Positions 4,881 through 63,345 of a DNA stretch of 64,000 nt are shown here, piece after piece; the first letter of the stretch is position 1; every line of letters begins with the position of its first letter. The stretch covers positions 248,001 through 312,000 of IMG/VR virus record IMGVR_UViG_3300044644_001125. The stretch is one strand, 5' to 3'. The position numbers and the translations under genes are program-made. The notes under the pieces are model-generated. The model was given only the letters and a program-made list of their open reading frames with translations. It made no database searches and had not been told where the DNA came from.

Positions 4881-6340
4881 CGGAGCAGAGGACGCGAGGG
4901 TCATTTAATTGACATGAGCGGCAACCGTCTTACCTGTTATTATACAGACATAGCTTACAAAGACAACTTCAATTTAACTAAATAGAGATATGAGCACATC
5001 TACTAAAATCACTGGATACAAAACGAAATGCCTGTTAAATCAGGAGCAGATCGCTTTGTTCGATAAATCAGTGGATGGTTGTGTATTTGCATATAACGAA
5101 TTTCTTGCATTGGTGAACGCCGAATATGCCATAACTGGTAAGATTTCTACCAAATGCTGTAGTGTCAAAGAATTAAGAAATAACAACCCGTGGTTAAAAG
5201 AGCTATCTAGTAGAGTAATCGATGGATCTCGTCTTAATCTATTGGATGCATTTAGCCGGTTCTTTAGTAAGCAAAATGACTTCCCAGTATTTAAAAACCG
5301 GTATAGTAAGAAATCACTAAGACATGCCGGCGATTGTTACTTGTACATGAAAAATGGGTATATGTACGCAGTTATTCCAAAAATTGGTCATGTGAAGCTA
5401 TTGACTGATTTCTCGGATTCAGCTAATCAATTTGATTATACAACTGTTACTGGGATAACCTTATCCCAAGATAGTCTTGGAAACTTTTATGTCTCATTTC
5501 ATGCGAAATCGACTACTGCTCATTTACCAAAGACCCATAAATCAGTTGGTATAGACCCAGGTCTTACTACTTTTGCGACCTTGAGCACTGGTAAAAAGAT
5601 CAAGAATCCAAGATTTCGTGAAAGAACAGAAAACCGAATGAAAGCGCTTCAGCGTAAACTCGCGAAATGTACCAAGAACTCAATAAGATATAACAAATAT
5701 AAGAAACAAATAGCTGCACTTCATCAGAAATCGGCAAATCAATTAAATGACTTCCATAAAAAGACATCAACTAAAATAACCAAAGGCTACGACAACATCT
5801 ATATTGAGGAAACTCAGACCAAAAACATGATGTCTCGTGGTAAGAAAAAAACAAAAAGCCCTAGACGCCTAGGGAAATCATTCGCTCAAGCCGGAATCAG
5901 TGCATTCCGTGAAATCTTGATAAGAAAGGCGGAGCTTGTTGGTAAAAAGGTTCATCTTGTACCAGCTCGCAATACAACAAAAACATGCAGTAGTTGTGGT
6001 CACATCCACAACGATTTAACTCTTAAAGATCGGTCATGGACTTGCCCCGTATGCGGTATTGAACATGACCGAGACATAAATGCTGCCCGTAATATATTAC
6101 AAAAAGGGCAAGCTAATCGGTTTACCGGAGGTGGACTTGTTGCACAGGGCAACAATACCGGGTTACCTAATCAAAAAAGGACGCAGCAAAGCGGGTTAAC
6201 TCCCGTTAGCAAAAGTACCAGTTCAGCTACTAGCAGTACCAGTAGCCTACCTGTTATTTAAACGTCTATTCACGGTTTATCCCGTGAACCGAGGACACGA
6301 CGTCCGAAGTTCTCAGGGATGCCGCGAAATACCGACGGTT
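4831..6340 (+). mobile_element. Non-autonomous tnpB-only element (IS200/IS605- or IS607-related); ends approximate
   Basis: GC-rich hairpins on both sides of tnpB (ACTCGGC/GCCGAGT 4831-4850; TTCACGG/CCGTGAA 6269-6288); lies between two fragments of an ART-like gene; no tnpA adjacent. Confidence 0.65.
4990..6261 (+). CDS. tnpB: RNA-guided endonuclease TnpB
   Basis: RuvC-I VGIDPG, RuvC-II IYIEE, zinc finger CSSC..CPVC, RuvC-III DRDINAARNI; N-terminal HTH-like region. Confidence 0.93.
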   Translation: MSTSTKITGYKTKCLLNQEQIALFDKSVDGCVFAYNEFLALVNAEYAITGKISTKCCSVKELRNNNPWLKELSSRVIDGSRLNLLDAFSRFFSKQNDFPVFKNRYSKKSLRHAGDCYLYMKNGYMYAVIPKIGHVKLLTDFSDSANQFDYTTVTGITLSQDSLGNFYVSFHAKSTTAHLPKTHKSVGIDPGLTTFATLSTGKKIKNPRFRERTENRMKALQRKLAKCTKNSIRYNKYKKQIAALHQKSANQLNDFHKKTSTKITKGYDNIYIEETQTKNMMSRGKKKTKSPRRLGKSFAQAGISAFREILIRKAELVGKKVHLVPARNTTKTCSSCGHIHNDLTLKDRSWTCPVCGIEHDRDINAARNILQKGQANRFTGGGLVAQGNNTGLPNQKRTQQSGLTPVSKSTSSATSSTSSLPVI

Positions 6341-6360
6341 TCTGCCACCTATGCTGGTGC
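6120..6360 (+). ncRNA. Putative TnpB omega-RNA (scaffold plus guide running into the flanking gene); boundaries uncertain
   Basis: Low-complexity C-terminal tail of tnpB followed by GC-rich hairpins (6269-6288; GGAC-acgac-GTCC); this is the expected position for TnpB guide RNAs. Confidence 0.45.
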
Positions 6361-6706
6361 CGAACCAAGCGCAACCGGTGAAATTACCCATTTCAAACAA
6401 TGTGGTAATGTGATGCCACTATTAATCAAACCCGGAAAATCAATGGTTGTCGATGCGAAAGGTGCTAACTGGAATGACATTTACATCAAAAAATATCCTA
6501 TCTTGGAAACAACCAACGATTTCGCGGAATATGCCCAATCAAATGGCAAGGATACTTTGTATATCAAAAACGTAAGAGATAATAAGACTTGGCAGAAAGA
6601 TAAACTTCCTAGCACGGTTGTATTTGCATTTCACCCATCTTATATAAGATCAATTAATGCAAAATTCGACCCAGCCAATCACGAAGATGAAGATTTAATG
6701 GCATGA
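6332..6706 (+). pseudogene. 3' fragment of the interrupted ART-like gene
   Basis: PTVSATYA..GNVMPLLIK..DTLYIKNVRD..VFAFHPSYIRSINAKFDP matches the C-terminal half of the ART-like family; no good RBS or start codon. Confidence 0.6.
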
Positions 6707-6769
6707 TATTATCAACTGTGTTATACTACATTCTCAGAATAACAGTCAATTACCACGAGGAGAAATAAG

Positions 6770-7033
6770 ATGAACACGATTGAATTGTTTTTAGCAGACT
6801 TGGAAAAGCTATGCGAGACGCACAATATCCAATTAATGTCCCCACCAAGTATAGCACCATTAGGAAACTCACAACGTAACTATTTGACATACCCGGGTGG
6901 TATAATGTCGGAGATGTTTGTACAACAGCAGCAAGTGGATATTACCATAAATCTACGAGCAATGCTAGAAGGTAATGTCCATCACGAGACAGACAACCGA
7001 CGTATTCACCCAGCTTTGAAGCATGACTATTAA
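6770..7033 (+). CDS. Hypothetical protein
   Basis: GAGGAG RBS; upstream extended -10 TGTTATACT at 6719. Confidence 0.65.
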   Translation: MNTIELFLADLEKLCETHNIQLMSPPSIAPLGNSQRNYLTYPGGIMSEMFVQQQQVDITINLRAMLEGNVHHETDNRRIHPALKHDY

Positions 7034-7118
7034 TCCCTAGTCATAGTACTGGCTTTTTAGTTTTTACTATGTTATACTGCATTCTCAGTTGGTAGTTTCA
7101 AGTATCTAAAAATAACAC

Positions 7119-7934: not shown

Positions 7935-10106
7935 ATGAGTTATGTAGATGCTTTTTATGAAAAAGATCGCGATATTATCCACGTAGTTGAACGTGATACA
8001 GATGGCATTCGCCATTACCGAGAATTTCCAGCAAACTATGTCTTTTATTACGAAGACCCAAATGGTAACCATCATTCAATGAAAGGTAAACCATTGTCTA
8101 GGGTTAAAAGTAAAACCCACAAAGAACATCATAAGAATATTGCTATATTTGGTCAAACCAAGAAGTTATATGAAAGTGATATCAATGTTACCTATCGTTG
8201 CCTTGAAGACCATTACCTTAACGCAGATGCACCTAAACTCAATGTCGCGTATTTCGATATCGAGACCAGTATGTGTCCTGATCGTGGGTATGCCGCACCA
8301 GACGATCCTTTTATGCCAATTGTTTCTATTGCTGTATATCTTCAGTGGTCTGAAACTATGATTTGTTTGGCAATTCCACCAAAACATATGAGTATAAAAG
8401 AAGCTGAAGAGCAAGTAGCTGAGTTTGAGAACACGTTTATCTTTAAAACAGAAAAGGAATTATTAGATACATTCCTTACTATTATCGAAGATGCTGATGT
8501 ATTAAGTGGTTGGAATTCTGAATCATTCGATATTCCATATACCGTTAATCGAGTTGCTAAGGTTTTAAGCAAAAACGATACTCGTCGATTCTGTTTATGG
8601 GATCAATCTCCTAAGAAACGTGAATTCGAGAAGTTTGGTAAGGTTTCGACTACTTTCGATTTGGTTGGTCGAGTTCATATGGATTACTTGGACATTTATC
8701 GCAAGTATACCCATGAAGAAAAGCCATCTTATCGATTGGATGCTATTGCTGAATATGAATTAGGTGACCATAAAACTCCGTATGATGGTACATTAGAACA
8801 GCTATACAATCAAGACTTTAAGACTTTTATCGAATATAACCGACAAGACGTTGCACTGTTAGATAGAATGGATAAGAAGTTGAAGTTTATGGATTTGGCT
8901 AATACGACTGCTCATGGTTGTACTGTATTGTTACCAACTACGTTAGGTTCCGTTGCAGCTATTGAACAAGCTATTATCAATGAGGCGCATAGTAAAGGGC
9001 AGATTGCACCTAATAGAAAGCCACGTAATGATAATGAAAACACGCAAGCTGCTGGTGCGTATGTTGCTTATCCCAAAAAAGGTCTACATGATTGGGTTGC
9101 TTCATTAGATATCAACTCGCTGTATCCTAGTACGATTCGTGCACTTAACATGAGTCCAGAGACTATCATCGGACAGTTAAGACCAGTGGCAACTGATAAG
9201 TTTATTGCAGATCAAATGGCTACAGGTAAGAAGTTTGCTTCATGCTGGGAAGGTGTATTTTCGACTTTAGAATATGATGATGTTATGTCAAGAGATTCAA
9301 ATCGTATGCTTACTATCGATTGGGAAGAAGGTAGCAGTGATGAACTTAGTGCTGCTCAAACCTACGATTTAATTTTCAAATCTGGTCAATCATGGATGTT
9401 AAGTGCAAATGGTACTATCTTTACTTTTGAAAAAGAGGGAATTGTACCTGGGCTATTGAAAAAGTGGTACGCTGATAGGCAAGGTATGCAAGCGAAAATG
9501 AAAATTGCACGCGATGCCGGACTCGACATCGAAGAACGATACTGGAGTATTAAGGAGCAATTTTGTAAATTATTGCTAAATAGTTTATACGGTGCTTTGC
9601 TCAATAGCGGTTGCAGGTTTTTTGATAAACGTATTGGCCAAAGTACAACGTTGACTGGTAGGTCTATCACTAGACACATGACAGCTCAGGTTAATGAAAT
9701 TGTATGCGGTGAATATAATTATCTAGGAAAATCAATACTTTACAATGACACGGATTCGCTAGAATCTGGATCTATCATTCGAACAACGAGTGGAGATTTG
9801 ACTATCGAAGAATTGTTCGATCGTGGTAATTTGAAATGGAATTCTGGTGATAAAGAATATTCACGCGATGATGATATACGAGTAATACACTGCGATGGGA
9901 CTGACAACTTGTCATATACCAATTATAATTATGTTTATCGACATAAAGTGTCTAAAAGACGATTTAAAATTATGACAGCGAATGGAAAAACGGTAACAGT
10001 AACCGAAGATCATAGTGTTATGATCAAAACGGATACTGGATATATTGAAAAGAAACCGATGGATATTAAACCAGGTGATGTGGTAATGACTATTAATACA
10101 GTATGA
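7935..10106 (+). CDS. DNA polymerase family B (gp43-like), N-terminal part fused to the split intein N-half
   Basis: Exo I FDIET, Exo II GWNSESFD, Exo III YNRQD; motif A DINSLYPS; motif B KLLLNSLYG; motif C YNDTD then intein sequence. Confidence 0.95.
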   Translation: MSYVDAFYEKDRDIIHVVERDTDGIRHYREFPANYVFYYEDPNGNHHSMKGKPLSRVKSKTHKEHHKNIAIFGQTKKLYESDINVTYRCLEDHYLNADAPKLNVAYFDIETSMCPDRGYAAPDDPFMPIVSIAVYLQWSETMICLAIPPKHMSIKEAEEQVAEFENTFIFKTEKELLDTFLTIIEDADVLSGWNSESFDIPYTVNRVAKVLSKNDTRRFCLWDQSPKKREFEKFGKVSTTFDLVGRVHMDYLDIYRKYTHEEKPSYRLDAIAEYELGDHKTPYDGTLEQLYNQDFKTFIEYNRQDVALLDRMDKKLKFMDLANTTAHGCTVLLPTTLGSVAAIEQAIINEAHSKGQIAPNRKPRNDNENTQAAGAYVAYPKKGLHDWVASLDINSLYPSTIRALNMSPETIIGQLRPVATDKFIADQMATGKKFASCWEGVFSTLEYDDVMSRDSNRMLTIDWEEGSSDELSAAQTYDLIFKSGQSWMLSANGTIFTFEKEGIVPGLLKKWYADRQGMQAKMKIARDAGLDIEERYWSIKEQFCKLLLNSLYGALLNSGCRFFDKRIGQSTTLTGRSITRHMTAQVNEIVCGEYNYLGKSILYNDTDSLESGSIIRTTSGDLTIEELFDRGNLKWNSGDKEYSRDDDIRVIHCDGTDNLSYTNYNYVYRHKVSKRRFKIMTANGKTVTVTEDHSVMIKTDTGYIEKKPMDIKPGDVVMTINTV
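9756..10103 (+). other. Split intein N-fragment (116 aa, Ser1)
   Basis: Starts SLESGSIIRT..LTIEELF immediately after YNDTD; block B VTEDHSV; ends KKPMDIKPGDVV then a stop. Confidence 0.9.
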
Positions 10107-10113
10107 GGAGATA

Positions 10114-11844
10114 ATGATGAATGAATTGGAAGAACGTAATTTAACAGTACTAACATTTAAAAAGAAGTACCCACGGCAGTACAAGTACTTGCTTGAATAT
10201 TACGGCGGGGTTCGTGTATTTGACAAAGCAGCGGCGGTGTGTTTATATTTACGAGGGGCTAAACCTCCGACATGCTCTATTTGTGGGAAATTACTTGCGG
10301 TTGATAAATGGTCTAGGAATTCGTCATATTCGCCAAGGTGTAATACTCACTCGAAAACTAACCCTGATACTATAGTAACTCGTGAGATATTAGAGGAAAA
10401 TAACCCACATGGGTATACTATTGTTGACGTGCCACTATATGCGTCACCATCGACCTATATAAAACTACACTGCCATAATCATGGTGATTTTTCACAACCA
10501 GCGTCTAATTTCCTTAAAGGTATGCGGTGTAATAAGTGCTATGATCGTAGTACTGAAATTCCAGTAAAAGTCGATTATAATACTTGGTTGGAGCGTAGTA
10601 TTGGACATTTTGGTGATTTTTATGATTATTCAAAAGTCAGTTTTACAAGAGTGGAACAGGATATGATAACAATAGGATGCCCAGATCATGGAGATTATGA
10701 GCAACGTGCATCGACTCATATGCGCGGCCATGGTTGCCCAAAATGTGCAAACGCATTGAGTAGTACAAATCTAACTCGATCGACTGCAGAATTTATCAGG
10801 TTGGCAAATATCAAGCATTCTGGAAAATACCAATACCCGAATACAATATATAATGGTTCTCGTTCTATTGTGGAAATTGAATGCCCGATACACGGGCCAT
10901 TTAATCAAGTCGCGTATTACCATCTTGCTGGGAATGCGTGTCAGCAGTGTGGTTATGAGATATCAACAAGCAGGTCCGCTGCAGAAAAAGAATTGGTTGC
11001 GTGGTTGGAAGATACGGGTATTTCTAACGTAACCCACTCTAATAGGATTTTCAGTTACGAGTTAGACGTTTATCTACCAGATTATAACATTGCAATCGAA
11101 TATAATGGATTGCATTGGCATTCTTCCAATAGTAAAGATTTAGATTGGAAATATAAATCTGCACACTTGTACAAGACCACTGAGTGTGAAAGTCGAGGTA
11201 TTCAACTATTTCATATCAACGAATCAGAATGGGGATTGAATGCAACGAAAAAGGAAATATGGAAATCGATTATACTTGAAAACCTACAGGTCGCACCAAC
11301 GATATTAAAGATTACTGACTGCGATATCATAATTGTGGATTCTAGCACCGCAATCGAGTTCATGGAAGAGAATCATATTTATGGTTACTTTCCTGGATCA
11401 TCGCATATTGGTTTAGAACGTGATGGTGTACTGGTTGCATTAGCCACCTTTGCCAAATCTAATGATAGAAATGCGAAACCAAATACGTATGAACTGGTAA
11501 GGTATGCCACCCTAATATACACAAGCATACCATCCGCGTTTAGTGTAATACTTTCGCATTTCACACAGGATAAGACTGGTGCATTAATTGCATATGCTGA
11601 TCGTAGATTCGATAACGGTGCTTTATTTGAATCCAATGGGTTCGTGTTAGATTCAATTGAAAAACCAACATATCAATATATCAAAGGTCAAAAAACGTAC
11701 CATCGTTGCAAATTCACCAAATCAATTGCGGAAAATACATTACCAATATTTGACAAAAGCAAAACTTTGGTTGAAAATATGTATGATAACAAATACCGCA
11801 GAATGTGGGATTGTGGCCAATTGATTTATATTTTACAATTTTAG
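10114..11844 (+). CDS. Free-standing homing endonuclease-like protein (zinc-ribbon repeats, Vsr/DUF559-like PD-(D/E)XK domain, C-terminal GNAT-like domain)
   Basis: Own GAGGAG RBS; three CxxHG...CxxC repeats; ELDVYLPDYNIAIEYNGLHWHS..GIQLFHINESEW; C-terminal YELVRYA..AYADRRF..WDCG. Confidence 0.85.
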   Translation: MMNELEERNLTVLTFKKKYPRQYKYLLEYYGGVRVFDKAAAVCLYLRGAKPPTCSICGKLLAVDKWSRNSSYSPRCNTHSKTNPDTIVTREILEENNPHGYTIVDVPLYASPSTYIKLHCHNHGDFSQPASNFLKGMRCNKCYDRSTEIPVKVDYNTWLERSIGHFGDFYDYSKVSFTRVEQDMITIGCPDHGDYEQRASTHMRGHGCPKCANALSSTNLTRSTAEFIRLANIKHSGKYQYPNTIYNGSRSIVEIECPIHGPFNQVAYYHLAGNACQQCGYEISTSRSAAEKELVAWLEDTGISNVTHSNRIFSYELDVYLPDYNIAIEYNGLHWHSSNSKDLDWKYKSAHLYKTTECESRGIQLFHINESEWGLNATKKEIWKSIILENLQVAPTILKITDCDIIIVDSSTAIEFMEENHIYGYFPGSSHIGLERDGVLVALATFAKSNDRNAKPNTYELVRYATLIYTSIPSAFSVILSHFTQDKTGALIAYADRRFDNGALFESNGFVLDSIEKPTYQYIKGQKTYHRCKFTKSIAENTLPIFDKSKTLVENMYDNKYRRMWDCGQLIYILQF

Positions 11845-11850
11845 GAGTTT

Positions 11851-11988
11851 ATGATGCAATTTGTTTCAGAATTATCAACGGTGACATTCGTTGAGGAGTT
11901 ATCACCGTTTGATGACGAATACGTATACGACATTGGAGTTAACGCAACAGATCCATGGTTTTTTGGTAACGATATACTAGTTCATAAT
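11851..11988 (+). other. Split intein C-fragment (46 aa), terminal His-Asn, +1 Ser
   Basis: Block F VYDIGV and block G ILVHN followed by S. Confidence 0.92.
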
Positions 11989-12837
11989 TCAGTATATTTC
12001 TCTGCGTATGAAACACTTAAACCAGATATCGAAGCTGGTTTGATTCCATGGGATAAAGAATCAATCATTCAGTTTTATGATGCAATTGGTGAAGAAGTTA
12101 ACGAGACTTTCCCTAAATTCATGTCCACTGCGTTTCATTGCCCTAAAGCACGTGGTTCTGTTATTAAGGCTGGTCGTGAGATTATTGGGTCTAAAGCGCT
12201 ATTCATTACTAAGAAACGGTACGCGGTTCTTTACTTCGACAAGGAAGGTAAACGTACAGATATTGATGGTAAGCCTGGAAAAGTAAAAGCTATGGGTTTG
12301 GACTTAAGACGATCCGACACCCCACCTCCCATTCAAGACTTTTTAAGTAATGTATTGGATATGGTTCTTAATGGCAAACCACAAGAGGATACAATCAAGT
12401 ACATTACCGAATTCAGACAAGAATTCAAGAAATGGAATGGTTGGGAAAAAGGTTCACCAAAACGAGCTAATAACATTACCAAGTATGGTACACTATTAAC
12501 CGATAAAGGCAAAGCAACGATACCAGGTCAAGTCAGAGCTAGTATCAATTGGAATACTTTAAAACGCATGAATAGTGACAAATATACTATGTCTATTATC
12601 GATGGATCAAAAGTGGTAGTTTGTACACTCAAAGATAACCCGATGGGATTCAAGAGCGTAGCGTACCCAGTTGATGAACAAAGATTACCTCAATGGTTCA
12701 AAGAACTCCCATTTGATGAAGCCATTATGGAAGAAAAGTTAATTGATGATAAGTTGGACAACTTGATTGGCGTACTCAACTGGGATTTGAGTGAAACCCG
12801 TCAGAATAACTTCTTTAATTCGTTGTTTTCGTTTTAA
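11851..12837 (+). CDS. Split intein C-half fused to the DNA polymerase B C-terminal part (palm/thumb)
   Basis: AGGAG RBS; YVYDIGV..FFGNDILVHN|SVYF; KKRYA; KAMGLDLRRSDTP. Confidence 0.95.
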   Translation: MMQFVSELSTVTFVEELSPFDDEYVYDIGVNATDPWFFGNDILVHNSVYFSAYETLKPDIEAGLIPWDKESIIQFYDAIGEEVNETFPKFMSTAFHCPKARGSVIKAGREIIGSKALFITKKRYAVLYFDKEGKRTDIDGKPGKVKAMGLDLRRSDTPPPIQDFLSNVLDMVLNGKPQEDTIKYITEFRQEFKKWNGWEKGSPKRANNITKYGTLLTDKGKATIPGQVRASINWNTLKRMNSDKYTMSIIDGSKVVVCTLKDNPMGFKSVAYPVDEQRLPQWFKELPFDEAIMEEKLIDDKLDNLIGVLNWDLSETRQNNFFNSLFSF

Positions 12838-12840
12838 GTA

Positions 12841-12870
12841 TTGACATATTGCGGTTAGTTGTAATATACT
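12841..12870 (+). promoter_or_regulatory. Sigma70-type promoter overlapped by an inverted repeat
   Basis: TTGACA-18-TATACT; ATTGCGGTTAGT/ACTGACCGCAAT arms span the spacer and the -10 box. Confidence 0.65.
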
Positions 12871-12888
12871 GACCGCAATTTAAACAAA

Positions 12889-12910
12889 GCTCGTGCCTAT
12901 CGGCACTCGC
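12889..12910 (-). repeat. GCGA-GTGCC-GATA-GGCAC-GAGC hairpin (copy of the 7569 element on the opposite strand)
   Basis: Reverse complement of gctcgtgcctatcggcactcgc; compensatory stem changes relative to 7569-7590. Confidence 0.8.
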
Positions 12911-12933
12911 AATAACCAATAAAGGAAAATAGT

Positions 12934-13257
12934 ATGCTGAAACGTGAGGATGTAAAACTTACCATTGAGATGGCACCAAAGCAATACGAAAAAGAATTAG
13001 CATGGGATACTGGTATGATGTACTGTTTTTCATTAGATATTAATGGAAAAACTGGTTGGAGATTACCTACTATATCAGATGTACGAGATTTATGGTTCCA
13101 ATATGATGCTTCCGAAATAGATGGAATCTACTGGACAAATCAAACCACACCAGGTGAAGATTTCGCATGGGCTGTTGATTCTGACGGTATAGATGCTACT
13201 GGATATGATAAGTGTATGGCTAAACTCATGGTTAGACCAGTACGAGATATCACTTGA
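12934..13257 (+). CDS. Short DUF1566/Lcl-like (CLec-fold) protein, paralog of the 60588-61473 genes
   Basis: EMAPK..YCFSLDINGKTGWRLPT..YWT..AW..VRPVRD. Confidence 0.75.
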   Translation: MLKREDVKLTIEMAPKQYEKELAWDTGMMYCFSLDINGKTGWRLPTISDVRDLWFQYDASEIDGIYWTNQTTPGEDFAWAVDSDGIDATGYDKCMAKLMVRPVRDIT

Positions 13258-13282
13258 CAACCCATTCACAAACCATTAAACT
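13254..13282 (+). promoter_or_regulatory. Sigma70-type promoter
   Basis: TTGACA-17-TAAACT. Confidence 0.6.
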
Positions 13283-13348
13283 ACACAAAGCAGTACCAGA
13301 TTCCACTTATATGTGGATTATTTTAACTTCAAACCTCGAGATTATATT

Positions 13349-14089
13349 ATGATTAAAGATACTCTACAAGACATCGTAGCACACACACATTCATTAGGTA
13401 TTTTACCAACAGTAAAAGTAACTGGAACACCAACATCAACTTCTATTGAATCTATTGCCGAAGATAAATCGGTTATTTTGCAGGCTGAAGTACATAAGCC
13501 AGTTGCAGAATTTGAAGGTGTATTTGGTTTACCTAACTTAGATAAGTTAAACATCCATTTAAAATGTCCAGAATACCGTGAAGACGGAAAAATTGAAGTT
13601 GTACGTGAAGTACGTGACGGAGTTGAAGTTCCGACTTCCCTACATTTTGAAAATGCAGCAGGTGACTTTTCAAATGACTACCGTTTTATGAGTACTGCGG
13701 TTATTAACGAAAAGATCAAGAATGCTATTTTCAATGGTGCACAGTGGAAGATTTCATTTGAACCGACTATTGCAAGTATTACGCGTTTGAAGTATCAAAG
13801 TACGGCTCATTCACAAGAACCAGTTCTGGAAATAAGTACAAAGAACAATAACTTAATCGTTAGTTTTGGTGATGCATCTACGCATGCTGGTAGTTTTATA
13901 TTCCATACAGTTACTGCTACTGAATCCTTAAAATATACTTGGTCTTGGCCAGTACATCAAATCATTCAGATTCTTGGATTAGCTGGTACTAAAACCATGA
14001 ACATTTCTGATGTTGGTGCGATGCAAATTATAGTTGATAGTGGTATTGCTGTATATAAGTACATCTTACCTGCATTATCTAGTAAGTAA
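13349..14089 (+). CDS. DNA polymerase sliding clamp (gp45-like)
   Basis: About 246 aa, two-domain alpha/beta pattern ending YKYILPA; located just downstream of polB; likely start at ATG 13349. Confidence 0.65.
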   Translation: MIKDTLQDIVAHTHSLGILPTVKVTGTPTSTSIESIAEDKSVILQAEVHKPVAEFEGVFGLPNLDKLNIHLKCPEYREDGKIEVVREVRDGVEVPTSLHFENAAGDFSNDYRFMSTAVINEKIKNAIFNGAQWKISFEPTIASITRLKYQSTAHSQEPVLEISTKNNNLIVSFGDASTHAGSFIFHTVTATESLKYTWSWPVHQIIQILGLAGTKTMNISDVGAMQIIVDSGIAVYKYILPALSSK

Positions 14090-14130: not shown

Positions 14131-14322
14131 ATGCAAAGAGTTACGATATTAACCCGTGAACAGATCAGTAAGTTGAGTGAAATCGCTGATAGATTTGAAG
14201 ATATACCACAATTTGAGATTTGGGAGAAATCCGAATCTGGTATTGGGGTTAATGATTATGTTAAGTTTGAACATGGTTCATTGTCAATTACGATTGATAT
14301 TACGGATGTGAGTAATTGGTGA
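14131..14322 (+). CDS. Hypothetical protein
   Basis: GGAGG RBS; conserved-looking SGIG and IDITDVSNW motifs. Confidence 0.7.
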   Translation: MQRVTILTREQISKLSEIADRFEDIPQFEIWEKSESGIGVNDYVKFEHGSLSITIDITDVSNW

Positions 14323-14900
14323 ACATGCCAGAAGTTATAGGGTCTTACGACCCAGCCGAATTGAATGACTTTGAAAACAACCACGAGTTGTACTTACAGT
14401 ATGATCGAAATCCAAGAAAGGATGAGTTGTTTTCTTTATCTCCAGATTCTAAGGTTTATATCCACTCGAAAGAAATCTACTGTTTGGATTCGAGTATTGA
14501 AAAACTTACGTATAGTATGGAGTTTAAAACTAAGTCAAATCCAGTATTAGGTACGTTTGTTTGGCAAGCTAGTGTGTGGCATTCTAAGATTGATCCAATC
14601 ACCACCGGATTGCCAGAAAAAGTATTTTTCGAATACTTGTTACCAACATACGAAACCGTGCTAACTGATTCTCGACAGTCTTGGGACGGTAAAAGATTCT
14701 GGATGGGATTGATTCCCAAGGCTTTTGAGAAAGGTTTGAATGTTTATTATTTTGACTTTAGTGATAACCGGCTAACCAAGATAATTGATTTAACCCATTG
14801 GAAATCGTTCTACAATCAGGTTGGGTCAAAGATATGGACTACTGCTGAAATAGGGCAGATGAAGCGTATGGTGATTACTTCTAAGTTGTTACAGGGATAA
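14319..14900 (+). CDS. Hypothetical protein, possible GNAT-like fold
   Basis: GTGA overlap; GLPEKVFFEYLL..LTDSRQSWDGKRFW. Confidence 0.55.
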   Translation: MNMPEVIGSYDPAELNDFENNHELYLQYDRNPRKDELFSLSPDSKVYIHSKEIYCLDSSIEKLTYSMEFKTKSNPVLGTFVWQASVWHSKIDPITTGLPEKVFFEYLLPTYETVLTDSRQSWDGKRFWMGLIPKAFEKGLNVYYFDFSDNRLTKIIDLTHWKSFYNQVGSKIWTTAEIGQMKRMVITSKLLQG

Positions 14901-38200: not shown

Positions 38201-41200
38201 TTAACCTTGGTATATACATACGCTTTACCTTGGTCGATAATTGAACTATCTGCATTTGGACTAGTTATAACTAGTGTTGAACCAGTTGGATTGATAGCAA
38301 TCGCATGTCCAAATTTATCACCAGTAGCATCACCAACCATATCATCAAGTTTAACAACCGAACTGTCATTCGATGCGTATATATAAACTGAGCCTTTTGG
38401 CTGATTTTCACCAACTGGATTTCCAACAACTAACGTAGATCCATCAGAAGTCATTACTAACGATTTACCAAATTCGTCCATATCAGTGCTGTTTTCTGGT
38501 AATGTATAAGTGGCGTCACCAAATACCCATTCTGAATTTGTATATCTATAAGTGTATACAATACCATGGTTATTTGTTAACGTGCTATCACCTGGGTGAA
38601 CTGCTGCAGAAACAGCTAAAAGATAATCGGTATCCGATGTTTTACCAAGTGCAACCGCTGTTCCAAACTGAACAGTATTCTCTAAATCTGGACTAACAAA
38701 TGAAGTTGAATATCTCCAGTTATTATCGTAATATTCATACACTGAAATAACACCTTGATTGGTTATATTACTCGGTGTACCAGTAGAATCTGATATGATA
38801 TTTGATGCCTCCTTCCACTTTGTTTTATCAGCAGTGGTATCATTGATACTATCGCCGATAATTTCAACAATAGATTCCAACAATGCATTTGAAGTTTTTA
38901 CAATAGCACCAATTGGATATATTGCAGTATTAGTATACGCACCTCGGTAATTACTACGAATATGAGATGCACTAGGTGACCCAACAATCAAGAATTTATT
39001 GTCTGGTGATATCGCCATCGATTTACCGAATGAACCATCCAATGAGCTACTACCAGTACGAATCCCTGAAATTGGTTCAACTGATTGATACCAATCCAAC
39101 CCAGTAGTTCCAACCGAATAAACTTCAATTCTATTAGAACCAGGAATACTGGTAATAACTTGGTTTAATGTTTTTGCATACACCGTGGTTGTACCAACAC
39201 CAATTGGATTATCACCATAAACTGTAGGACTAACTACTGAATATTGGTCTTTCTTTTGTGATACTTCCCACTTATCAGAATCATTCGCATCAACCCACAG
39301 TTTAGCACCGACTGGCAACGTAGCAGCATACAAATCATCAATATCAGAGTATGATTTATATCTAGCTTTCTTGAAGGTACAAGCATAAATTGGTTTGTTT
39401 TGGTTTAATGTTGGGATTGTAGATAGCAATGAACTATCAATAGAGACAGTATTCCAAGTCACACCAACTACTTTAAATATACCAGAAAACGCAGTGATTG
39501 TTCCTAGTGGTCTGACAGCAAATACATCACCAACTTCATAGGTATGTCTACTAGAAAGTTCAAAATCAATTGTACTGGTTTCTGTGATGTTTACTACGCG
39601 CAACGCAGTATCATTGAATCTAAAGACATTCCAAGAATAATCATCGAATGTTACCCAGATATTGGCATTGTCTTTAATTGCACGGATATCAAGATTTAGA
39701 ATATCATCAATAGTTTTAACCATATATGAAACGTGTTTAGTGTTAACATACCCAGCAGTTCTCGATGGTTCTGTTTCATATGATAACTTATTAATACCAA
39801 CTGTATTACTTGGAGTTAATGTGAAATCAGATGACTTGATTTGGTACGCAATACCATCAGATACGGATGTATCAGTAACTAGTAATGGTTGTGGGTTAAG
39901 TTTTATTTTATTCTTCTCGATATAAAACTCAAATTCTTCGATTGCATCCACCCCACCAAACTGGCCAACTCTAAATGCCCATTCTTCATTAAGAACAATA
40001 CTAGAATCACCAGATCTGCTTAGTTTATCAAATACCTTGGTTACTGCATTAATTGTACCTTTTTCACGAATAAATCCTTGATATAGCTGGAATTGAGTAA
40101 CTGGATCTTCTGCTAAATCTTGCAAATAACCTCTAGGTTGATACCCAATGGCATGCCTTGCTAGAGTTCGTTGTGATTCACCAATACCTTCCGCAGTAGT
40201 ATCGTAATATTCATCAAATTGGTTAATCTTATAATCAAAGTTAGAAACCAATTCCTTTGTTGGGTTTGTATCAAGTTTAGACCAAACTGCATTGTCAAAT
40301 GATTCGGTGCTTGTATGTGATTTAATACAAGTCCAATTTGTTGAACGATAAGCAACAATATCACCTAGTTTGTAATCTTTATATTGTTGCCAAACAACAA
40401 TATTAACATTGTCGAATAAGAATCCTGGGCTTGTGTAATCACCATCCCAATCAACTGTTCTAAATCCCTGTGATTTGATTCTACCTTGTCTATAACCTGT
40501 AGTTTTATCATAGATAACATCGTTGAAAACCGTTCTATCAGAAAATACGGTTACATGCTCTTTTAGAACACAGTACATATTAAGGTAATAAATCCCATCA
40601 GTTGTCGAATCTGGTGTGATGACAATATTTTGGAAAGTTCTAGTTACATTAAGTTGTTCAATCGGGAATACTTGACCATTACTTTTTAAGATTTCGTAAT
40701 CATAAAATCCATCAGTTAAGCTATCAACAACACCACCATTCATATTAATTTCAATTCTACTTGAAATTGGACTTAATGAAATAAGAGATCCAGCTGCCCA
40801 ATTATGCTTCGTCCAGAACATGAATTCTTTACAACTCGTTGTCCAGTTAATAGGCACTCGGTTTTCAGCATCATATCCACTGAATACAAATCCGATAGAT
40901 TTCAAGTAAACTTCATAACCCAACAAGAAATCAACTACTTCTTGAATAGATTCCAAGGTAGTTCCATATAGCATTTGTTTAATAGTAAACTTATTGAATG
41001 ATTTACGATTTTTAGCTACAACTTCGCCGGTTATCGGCAAATTTGACAGCAACTTCCAGTAATCGTGCTCATCATTAAATGTCGTACTTGAATTGGTTTT
41101 TAATGCTCTGTAAAAATGCTGTTCATATCTTACGATTTGACCATTCGCATACGTTACATTTGGTTCCCAATCAGTATAGGCCGCACTAACACCACCAACA

Positions 41201-62849: not shown

Positions 62850-63345
62850 TGCTCACCGAATTACTAGATAGAACATAGAAAGGTGAGAGAATTGCTAAGA
62901 AAGCCGCGCACAGGCGACCATTACGTGCCCTTAAACCCTGGTCTACTTGAATCACAGGGGATGGAAGTTCCGACATTAGCAACGGAGATATAGTTCACTA
63001 CCCCACCAGATGAGTTATGGGATATGCCTTCATACAACCCATTTGAACTATAGCAAAAACGAATAACCAAGGCTAAAGATGGGTTGAGAAAACCCACGTT
63101 TACTAGATAAGGTAGCTGTTGTCTAGTAAGCCACCGTCAGATTAATAAGACTGAGCTCGAGGTACCGGCTGACCGCCTCTGTAATGCTCTACATGCTACT
63201 GTGATGCGATGCTTGTACGCAGAACCCTTGGACGTTTCAGTTCCACAATTAGAAATGTCCATTGTCCTTTGAATTAACCCGAGTTTTTCGGGTTAAGATG
63301 TTCAGCTCCACAACCCGCAGTGAGGGCTCCGCTGGCGCGTCGCTT
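62850..63345 (+). ncRNA. Putative large structured non-coding RNA; family not identified
   Basis: GC-richer ORF-free tract with many helices: 62852/62882, 62989/63044, 63080/63091, 63100/63120, 63153-63189 nested, 63230/63252, 63274/63288; upstream promoter. Confidence 0.7.

Follow-up and report, generated by a model that had tools for sequence, protein, structure and literature searches.

A split-intein polymerase gene of a lake-water jumbo phage encloses a putative homing endonuclease with a divergent Mom-like domain

Vsr-like endonucleases of the 'EDxHD' family were first found between the halves of split inteins, in fractured genes (Dassa 2009, PMC2677866). I-Bth0305I cleaves the intron-less allele and Hef has been tied to the same family (Taylor 2011, PMC3239194); the Hef of phage U5 is reported to cut nrdB. 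A split intein in the DNA polymerase gene polB, together with an endonuclease gene, has been published for the Pseudomonas jumbo phages MIJ3 and PA5oct (Imam et al. 2019, PMC6892783). Fusions of Mom with a restriction endonuclease (Mom-REase) are also known from jumbo phages, where they were read as restriction-modification systems (Iyer 2021, PMC7824862). Mom itself transfers glycine from Gly-tRNA to the N6 of adenine in double-stranded DNA (PMC13219725). The arrangement, the endonuclease family and the Mom-REase fusion have each been published separately, and a full-text literature search found no publication that joins the three. Here, we analyse a split polB and the 576-residue endonuclease (P0001) encoded within it, which lie on a stretch of 64,000 nucleotides from the IMG/VR record IMGVR_UViG_3300044644_001125 (positions 248,001 to 312,000; hereafter the window, whose numbering is used unless stated otherwise). 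The record is a 327-kb virus genome from lake water, that of an uncultured giant or jumbo phage, and its polB shows a distant likeness to those of PA5oct-type, Asterius-type and Atu_ph07-type jumbo phages. We consider it probable that the locus is a polB fractured by a split intein and a homing endonuclease gene, and that the endonuclease family carries a GNAT-fold domain of the Mom clade which likely acts as a transferase in the family at large and is impaired in this copy.

The polymerase is encoded by two separate open reading frames on the plus strand. PolB-N (7935..10106) matches the Pfam families DNA_pol_B_exo1, DNA_pol_B and, at residues 622-719, Intein_splicing, while polB-C (11851..12837) begins with the C-terminal half of the intein (Pfam Intein_splicing positions 131-155) and then continues as polymerase. 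Between them lies the endonuclease frame (10114..11844, plus strand, stop codon TAG at 11842-11844), which is not a chance frame since the whole protein matches relatives at E values down to 0. The stop codon of polB-N (TGA, 10104-10106) is overlapped by the ribosome-binding site GAGGAG and is followed by a gap of 7 nucleotides (10107-10113, GGAGATA); a second gap of 6 nucleotides (11845-11850) precedes the ATG of polB-C at 11851, and here an AGGAG overlaps the endonuclease stop. An earlier reading made from the letters alone (the sequence-only reading) had described a separate endonuclease frame between intein halves with exactly these gaps and its own ribosome-binding site, and the coordinates and gap sequences agree with that description. 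Apart from polB-C, the one DNA_pol_B match in the 327-kb genome is polB-N; the split polB is therefore the sole family-B polymerase of this phage, and splicing must matter to it. Sites at 9901-9929 and 11750-11778 resemble promoters only in matching a consensus, and no hairpin of the type described by Dassa was found 5' of the endonuclease gene (z 0.37) or of polB-C (z 0.41).

Contigs of four lake or aquatic metagenomes were compared with positions 8600-13400 at 80% likeness, a comparison that for this reason shows presence and not frequency. In two sequencing runs from different studies (X3 and X5), a contig joins position 9757 to position 12021 with 30 nucleotides in between. The joint reads in frame as ...TDS(S/A)YFSAYSTLRPD, that is, as a polB without intein and without endonuclease gene, from which exactly the 2233 nucleotides of 9756..11988 are absent. 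Over 8600-9483, the X3 contig shares about 88% of its nucleotides with the window, which assigns it to a related phage. The unit of N-intein, endonuclease gene and C-intein thus behaves as one insertion, as had been proposed, with the endonuclease gene at the canonical position inside an intein that it splits. The layout of polB-N, endonuclease and polB-C recurs in the syntenic relatives L009 and L010, on the contig that encodes P0005 and in the PA5oct-like Pseudomonas phage Paride. Other relatives of the endonuclease are free-standing, beside the major capsid gene, gp32/frd and similar genes.

The split intein carries the expected ends. Its N-terminal half opens with SLESGS (S608) and contains TEDH, its C-terminal half closes with ILVHN, and the +1 residue is a Ser followed by VYFS. 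Removal of the intein would restore YNDTD-SVYFS, colinear with YGDTDSVYFS in Salmonella phage Munch, whose PolB is uninterrupted. This predicted product also agrees with the DTDS(S/A)YFS of the natural empty allele. With 116 and 46 residues, the two halves are close to or within the published lengths of 88-105 and 33-54 residues (PMC2677866). The N-intein is 52% identical to the corresponding region of the polB mini-intein of Salicola phage SCTP-2, a contiguous intein that sits at YGD^TDS with Thr at +1, two codons 5' of the present site, YNDTD^S. Homologous inteins were found by tblastn in PA5oct-like, Aes508-like and Lak phages; the query lacked the first 10 intein residues, which left the outcome unaffected. 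A homologous intein thus occurs in three states: contiguous (SCTP-2), split around a 353-residue gene product (Aes508), and split around a long endonuclease (here and in the PA5oct-like phages). This series would fit the model of Dassa, in which an endonuclease gene invades an intein, without proving that route for the present lineage, for which the sequence-only reading had proposed that insertion of the endonuclease gene split a formerly contiguous intein. In the Aeromonas phages Aes508/AS-gz, the split gp43 has a homologous polB N-intein (38% identity) and a Vsr-like gene between the halves; the 353-residue protein ends with the Vsr domain and has no GNAT part, and a further endonuclease gene and a group I intron also interrupt this polB. 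As a split intein with Ser at both position 1 and position +1, the present one may be of interest to collectors of cysteine-less split inteins.

The phage appears to be rich in inteins. Outside the window, further intein-splicing domains lie at 320278-320748 and 193686-194936 of the 327-kb record, in frames of 1056 and 862 residues; the 862-residue frame (193686-194936) may hold two such domains, and weaker matches were found at 40030 and 68839.

The published arrangement nearest to this one is that of MIJ3, PA5oct and Paride, which share the gene, the site in motif C and the layout, with an endonuclease of 560-576 residues between the intein halves. Their intein is 38% identical to the one described here, and its published MIJ3 form can be recognised as having the same blocks A, N2, B, N4, F and G; their endonuclease is 38% identical to this copy over 93% of its length. 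The two belong to different lineages, with 65% nucleotide identity over one fifth of the region and a more divergent GNAT domain here. The MIJ3 paper labels the endonuclease 'HNH', a label that the nuclease match to I-Bth0305I given below does not support, and no mention of a GNAT or Mom domain was found in the passages searched (PMC6892783).

The endonuclease itself combines several modules. Zinc ribbons of the form CxxHG..CxxC are found at residues 120/139, 189/208 and 257/276, their Cys and His ligands are invariant or nearly so among 60 relatives, and the region matches Pfam DUF723 (E 3.5e-5), which upholds the three zinc ribbons named by the sequence-only reading. They presumably form the DNA-binding and target-recognition part of the protein. 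For the nuclease domain (residues 285-394), single-sequence matches in Pfam are weak (Vsr, E 0.088; MTES_1575, E 0.0015), while a family profile built from 53 relatives matches 3R3P, the catalytic domain of I-Bth0305I, at E 2e-8. Residues E316, D318, E329, H336 and K354, each invariant or conserved to at least 90%, are all present in this copy; the residues mutated in 3R3P, D196 and H213, are the counterparts of D318 and H336 in the alignment. The Vsr-like nuclease that had been recognised earlier is therefore confirmed, and the profile match together with the five residues places the protein in the Vsr-like EDxHD family of homing endonucleases, in accordance with the GenBank annotation of relatives as 'Hef-like homing endonuclease'. 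As in the fractured genes of Dassa, a free-standing Vsr-like gene with a nuclease homologous to 3R3P lies between the halves of a split intein. In contrast, the published members of the family are bipartite, with a NUMOD or helix-turn-helix part followed by the nuclease (PMC2677866, PMC3239194); in the present protein, zinc ribbons take the place of the NUMOD or helix-turn-helix part and a domain of 182 residues follows the nuclease.

Two paralogues with some of these modules are encoded in the 327-kb record, outside the window. A free-standing paralogue of 519 residues (~4887..6446, plus strand; 769..2328 of L002) has a different, helix-turn-helix-like N-terminal part, a Vsr-like nuclease and an even more degraded GNAT-like tail, with YTENEW for YADRRW. 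A protein of 492 residues (~155341..156819, minus strand; 1282..2760 of L003), whose gene adjoins a ClpP-like gene, has five DUF723-type zinc-ribbon repeats, another nuclease-like C-terminus and no GNAT part.

The C-terminal domain of this copy gave no useful match in Pfam, in NCBIfam or in a phmmer search of the PDB, whether the whole protein or the tail alone was used, and no match to Pfam Mom (PF25680) even at E 10. Because such single-sequence searches were uninformative, the assignment of the tail came only from relatives and profiles. Structure prediction, which the sequence-only reading had proposed for this region, returned a GNAT fold: the AlphaFold2 model of the tail (~182 residues, 395-576), made with an alignment of 58 tails (A1), has a predicted local distance difference test (pLDDT) score of 95.5. 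A Foldseek search with this model places Mom of phage Mu (8BV8) first, at E 6e-7, and ordinary GNATs next. The A1 profile matches GNAT acetyltransferases in the PDB (2BSW, E 7e-7) and Mu Mom alone at E 3e-4, and its alignment by hhalign to a profile of 35 Mom proteins (A3) reaches a probability of 96.1% and E 3.5e-9 over 123 columns. Furthermore, six relatives match Pfam Mom on this domain, with 24.7-31.2 bits around a cut-off of 27.1. The earlier suggestion of a GNAT-like tail thus stands, and within the GNATs the domain is Mom-like. Between strands beta6 and beta7 there is an insertion with helices (residues 517-561), similar in length to the helix-turn-helix-like insertion that Mom needs for activity and at most possibly homologous to it; the hhalign match stops before it. 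The tail shares with Mu Mom the GNAT fold and the motif AD(E/R)R...G..Y...F, as well as counterparts of H58, R111, S124, D149 and R151. It differs in being only ~15% identical, in being fused to a nuclease instead of standing alone, in having Phe for Y159 and in remaining below the Pfam Mom threshold. A Mom family search of the whole 327-kb genome found no stand-alone Mom gene.

The sequence-only reading had described this tail as some 190 extra residues. The motifs that it quoted are present; the residues are not extra, since the domain belongs to the family as a whole. It occurs in 100 of 121 relatives, and PHROG 559 and 3339 cover the full length of the protein, tail included. The 21 remaining relatives end after the nuclease and keep the nuclease residues. 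The Mom-clade domain of Hef-type homing endonucleases has matches in 911 phage records, whereas stand-alone versions of the Mom-like domain were found in 7 proteins only, most of them on short contigs (the length window limits this search). A 2025 paper on PHROG 559 intron endonucleases reports a Vsr signature only. The Mom-REase fusions of Iyer (2021) very likely belong to the same protein family.

Residues named as important for the activity of Mom include S124, R151, D149, R111, H58, Y59 and Y159 (PMC13219725). Among the 58 tails of A1, the counterpart of H58 is H421 (conserved in 56), that of R111 is R463 (57) and that of S124 is S477 (43). D149 corresponds to D496, with Asp in 42 tails and Asn in 16, and R151 to R498 (53 tails); at the position of Y159, Tyr is found in 56 tails and Phe in this copy (F505). 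Since the functional positions of Mom are conserved family-wide, a transferase is the likeliest reading at the level of the family: the Mom-like domain would most likely be catalytically active there and transfer a group to nucleic acid at the target site of the endonuclease or close to it.

In some relatives, another Mom-like fusion accompanies the locus. A gene for 496-540 residues with DUF7487 and a weak Mom match (8059..9549 on the P0005 contig; Paride_0115) lies some 2.3 kb beyond the split polB on its downstream side, three genes past polB-C; the window has no counterpart at that place.

The Mom-like domain of the present copy has drifted while its nuclease has not. At the 29 near-invariant GNAT positions, each at least 85% conserved among the 100 domain-bearing relatives, this copy and the 91%-identical P0002 deviate at 9, compared with a family median of 1; none of 9 near-invariant nuclease positions is changed. 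The changes are R401T, Q423Y, G474S, K478V, W499F, Y505F, L539A, E552L and I564M, and beside them stand G475A and the replacement of a neighbouring YARK by KITD. In the beta4-alpha3 loop, where the family has G474-G475-x-S-K478, this copy reads S-A-F-S-V, and the Gly-rich loop is lost. According to the secondary structure of the model, the lost residues map to the beta4-alpha3 loop, the start of alpha3, the end of beta5 and alpha4. The near-invariant beta4 strand, beta4-alpha3 loop, beta5 end and alpha4 are what we take to be the classic GNAT sites of donor or cofactor binding and of catalysis. The GNAT part of this copy is 37-41% identical to members of its clade, which are 48-57% identical among themselves, and its nuclease part shows no comparable excess divergence from the clade. 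We therefore hold that the Mom-like domain here, on a long branch, most likely has an impaired catalytic function and is retained for structure or binding. The proposal of the sequence-only reading that the tail could modify DNA is doubtful for this copy: with 9 of 29 near-invariant residues lost, including the loop Gly, the Lys that follows and the Tyr aligned with Mom Y159, DNA modification is less likely here than in the relatives.

The endonuclease also shows traces of exchange between modules. Compared with the sister phage L009, polB is 93-98% identical at the nucleotide level, the zinc-ribbon half of the endonuclease gene is the most divergent part (69-85%), and the nuclease-GNAT half with the C-intein is 98.7-100% identical. 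This near-identical tract of about 1 kb, 11100-12150, in a background of 93-98% suggests a recent exchange. A relative, P0003, consists of an N-terminal half 83.5% identical to this copy and a nuclease-GNAT half 97-98% identical to P0004; it is clearly the product of recombination between endonuclease alleles, with the joint at the domain boundary. The identity steps against L009 and the mosaic P0003 indicate modular exchange, in which the DNA-binding half moves separately from the nuclease-GNAT half. An origin of the nuclease-GNAT half of the present copy in another clade was also considered and rejected, as its best matches are in the clade to which the remainder of the protein also points, with the long branch confined to the GNAT part.

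We hypothesize that the 2233-nucleotide segment 9756..11988, inserted in polymerase motif C between YNDTD and S and composed of N-intein, endonuclease gene and C-intein, is a mobile unit. The two PolB pieces would be translated separately, the intein halves would associate, and trans-splicing would restore YNDTD-SVYFS. The endonuclease would bind DNA through its zinc-ribbon repeats and probably cuts polB alleles without the unit in co-infecting relatives, after which recombinational repair would copy the unit into the cut allele. In this way the endonuclease probably drives, or once drove, the invasion of empty polB alleles by the 2.2-kb unit when phages infect the same cell.

Several observations weigh against parts of this proposal. 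The substituted GNAT residues could reflect an altered donor or substrate and not a loss of activity, and D496, R498, S477, R463 and H421, the counterparts of Mom D149, R151, S124, R111 and H58, are all retained. The ratio of nonsynonymous to synonymous substitution rates (dN/dS) in comparison with L010, 0.35 for the GNAT part against ~0.1, is soft, with dS saturated or undefined. Among the metagenome contig joints listed, none corresponds to an allele whose intein is contiguous and free of the endonuclease gene. The co-folding test likewise lends only weak support to association of the intein halves. The halves scored 0.51, with 0.00 for the best control, in a run for which the N-terminal half lacked its first 10 residues (block A). 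Among 78 solved complexes, 51 pass the mark of this test, as do 2 of 108 mismatched pairs; passes with a score of 0.60 or less come from only 5 of those solved complexes and from every mismatch that passed (4 of 180). At least 91% of contacts are common to the runs, and the partner pLDDT is at least 67; because solved split inteins exist, the pass may reflect likeness and not binding of this particular copy.

The fusion of a nuclease to a Mom-like domain could also be read as a one-chain conflict system akin to restriction-modification, in which the Mom-like part places a modification on adenines in the DNA of the phage itself, and the nuclease attacks DNA that lacks it, whether of the host or superinfecting. 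This is the reading stated by Iyer (2021, PMC7824862) for the jumbo-phage Mom-REase fusions; five 'momylating enzymes' were counted there in PA5oct, where the present protein matches five places, and the strong conservation of the GNAT positions across the family accords with it. It fits poorly, however, with a gene that sits exactly where an intein carries its endonuclease, with nuclease residues kept in the 21 of 121 relatives that have no GNAT domain (the Aes508 gene, at the same polB site, has none either), and with a degraded GNAT domain beside an intact nuclease, which in an obligatory pair would be self-harming. Furthermore, the unit is precisely absent in relatives, other members of the family occupy classic homing-endonuclease sites beside conserved genes, and, by our own reasoning, co-infecting genomes meet the same pool of enzyme, so that modification cannot discriminate between them. 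We judge such a system improbable here; the intein context, the empty alleles and the typical positions point to a homing endonuclease rather than to the restriction-modification reading. That the endonuclease gene is a decaying passenger late in its homing cycle, no longer cutting, in a locus where only the split intein matters to the phage, seems improbable as well. The loss of residues in the GNAT domain and the apparent fixation of the unit in several related phages would suit such a passenger, but the frame is open over 576 residues with 9 of 9 near-invariant nuclease positions kept, and dN/dS against L009 is 0.12-0.17 in the variable parts (the extein/intein split in this analysis was 10 residues off, which did not affect the outcome). 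The tract shared with L009 suggests recent exchange, and empty alleles coexist in the same waters.

A different question is what the Mom-like domain does in a homing endonuclease. It might, throughout the family, be a non-catalytic module that binds DNA, as a base-flipping reader, or tRNA, and that serves recognition or regulation without group transfer. Homing endonucleases bind DNA through modules, 21 of 121 relatives do without the domain, degraded copies stay open reading frames (P0001 and P0002, identical in this, and the 519-residue paralogue of L002), and stand-alone versions are almost lacking (7 matches). Yet the residues that hardly vary are polar and fall on the cofactor and catalytic sites of GNATs, among them the counterparts of Mom H58, R111, S124, D149, R151 and Y159; they are also common to enzymes at unrelated insertion sites, which presumably have different targets, where a sequence reader would be expected to vary. 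We regard a purely binding role across the family as rather unlikely. A more specific version of the preferred transferase reading, which we hold unlikely as it stands, is that the Mom-clade domain is a site-aimed DNA transferase which, like Mom, draws on a charged tRNA or an acyl donor and thereby marks a base within the target of its own endonuclease or directly beside it. If this were true, a family of selfish endonucleases would carry its own device for chemical immunity or marking, and copies nested in their own target, such as this one inside a split intein, would no longer need the Mom-like domain and would let it decay.

The same protein family thus appears to have two published readings, as a Hef-like EDxHD homing endonuclease and as a momylating restriction-modification enzyme, that have never been set side by side. 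The present locus holds a member of this family at a position that is unmistakably that of a homing endonuclease; an empty allele occurs in nature, and the Mom-like domain has drifted where the nuclease has not. New relative to the published systems are the partly decayed Mom-like domain, the natural empty polB allele and the mosaicism of modules. Because the chemistry of Mom is known (glycine from a charged tRNA), the role of a highly conserved Mom-type domain in hundreds of phage homing endonucleases becomes a testable question, as does whether this domain is dispensable once the gene sits inside its own target. Positions of the parts of the locus are collected in Table 1.

Table 1. Parts of the split polB locus, in window positions, with the basis of each assignment
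Feature	Position	Strand	Basis
polB N-extein, residues 1-607, ends with YNDTD of polymerase motif C	7935..9755	+	Pfam; alignment to Munch PolB; codons
N-intein, residues 608-723 of polB-N (116 residues) and TGA; Ser first, block B TEDH	9756..10106 (intein 9756..10103)	+	Pfam; SCTP-2 alignment; codons
7-nucleotide spacer; ribosome-binding site overlapping the polB-N stop	10107..10113	+	Sequence
Endonuclease residues 1-100: helical N-terminal part with CxxC...CxxH motif	10114..10413	+	Full-length AlphaFold2 model, pLDDT ~90; no Pfam match
Endonuclease residues 101-284: three DUF723-type zinc-ribbon repeats	10414..10965	+	Pfam; conserved ligands; AlphaFold2 model
Endonuclease residues 285-394: Vsr-like (EDxHD family) nuclease	10966..11295	+	Family profile against 3R3P; invariant columns
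Endonuclease residues 395-576 and TAG: Mom-clade GNAT-fold domain, divergent in this copy	11296..11844	+	
6-nucleotide spacer; AGGAG ribosome-binding site overlapping the endonuclease stop	11845..11850	+	Sequence
C-intein, residues 1-46 of polB-C, blocks F and G, ends with ILVHN	11851..11988	+	Pfam; SCTP-2 alignment; codons
polB C-extein, residues 47-328, starts with SVYFS, and stop	11989..12837	+	Pfam; alignment

Other features of the window lie apart from this locus. Upstream of polB, a frame of 423 residues (4990..6261, plus strand) is TnpB-like, with matches to Pfam OrfB_IS605, the Cas12f1-like TNB and HTH_OrfB_IS605; the entire segment ~5100-7050 is absent from the sister phage L009 and for this reason looks like a recent insertion. 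Downstream, the plus-strand frames 12934..13257 and 14316..14900 also lack a counterpart in L009, within a stretch that is otherwise 91-97% identical; one encodes 107 residues with a borderline Lcl_C match and the other 194 residues without assigned family. Near the end of the window, at 62903..63053 on the plus strand, there is a full-length match to Rfam RF01718 (Polynucleobacter-1 RNA motif), with 80 bits against a gathering score of 37, which may be a pointer to the host or to a small RNA borne by the phage.

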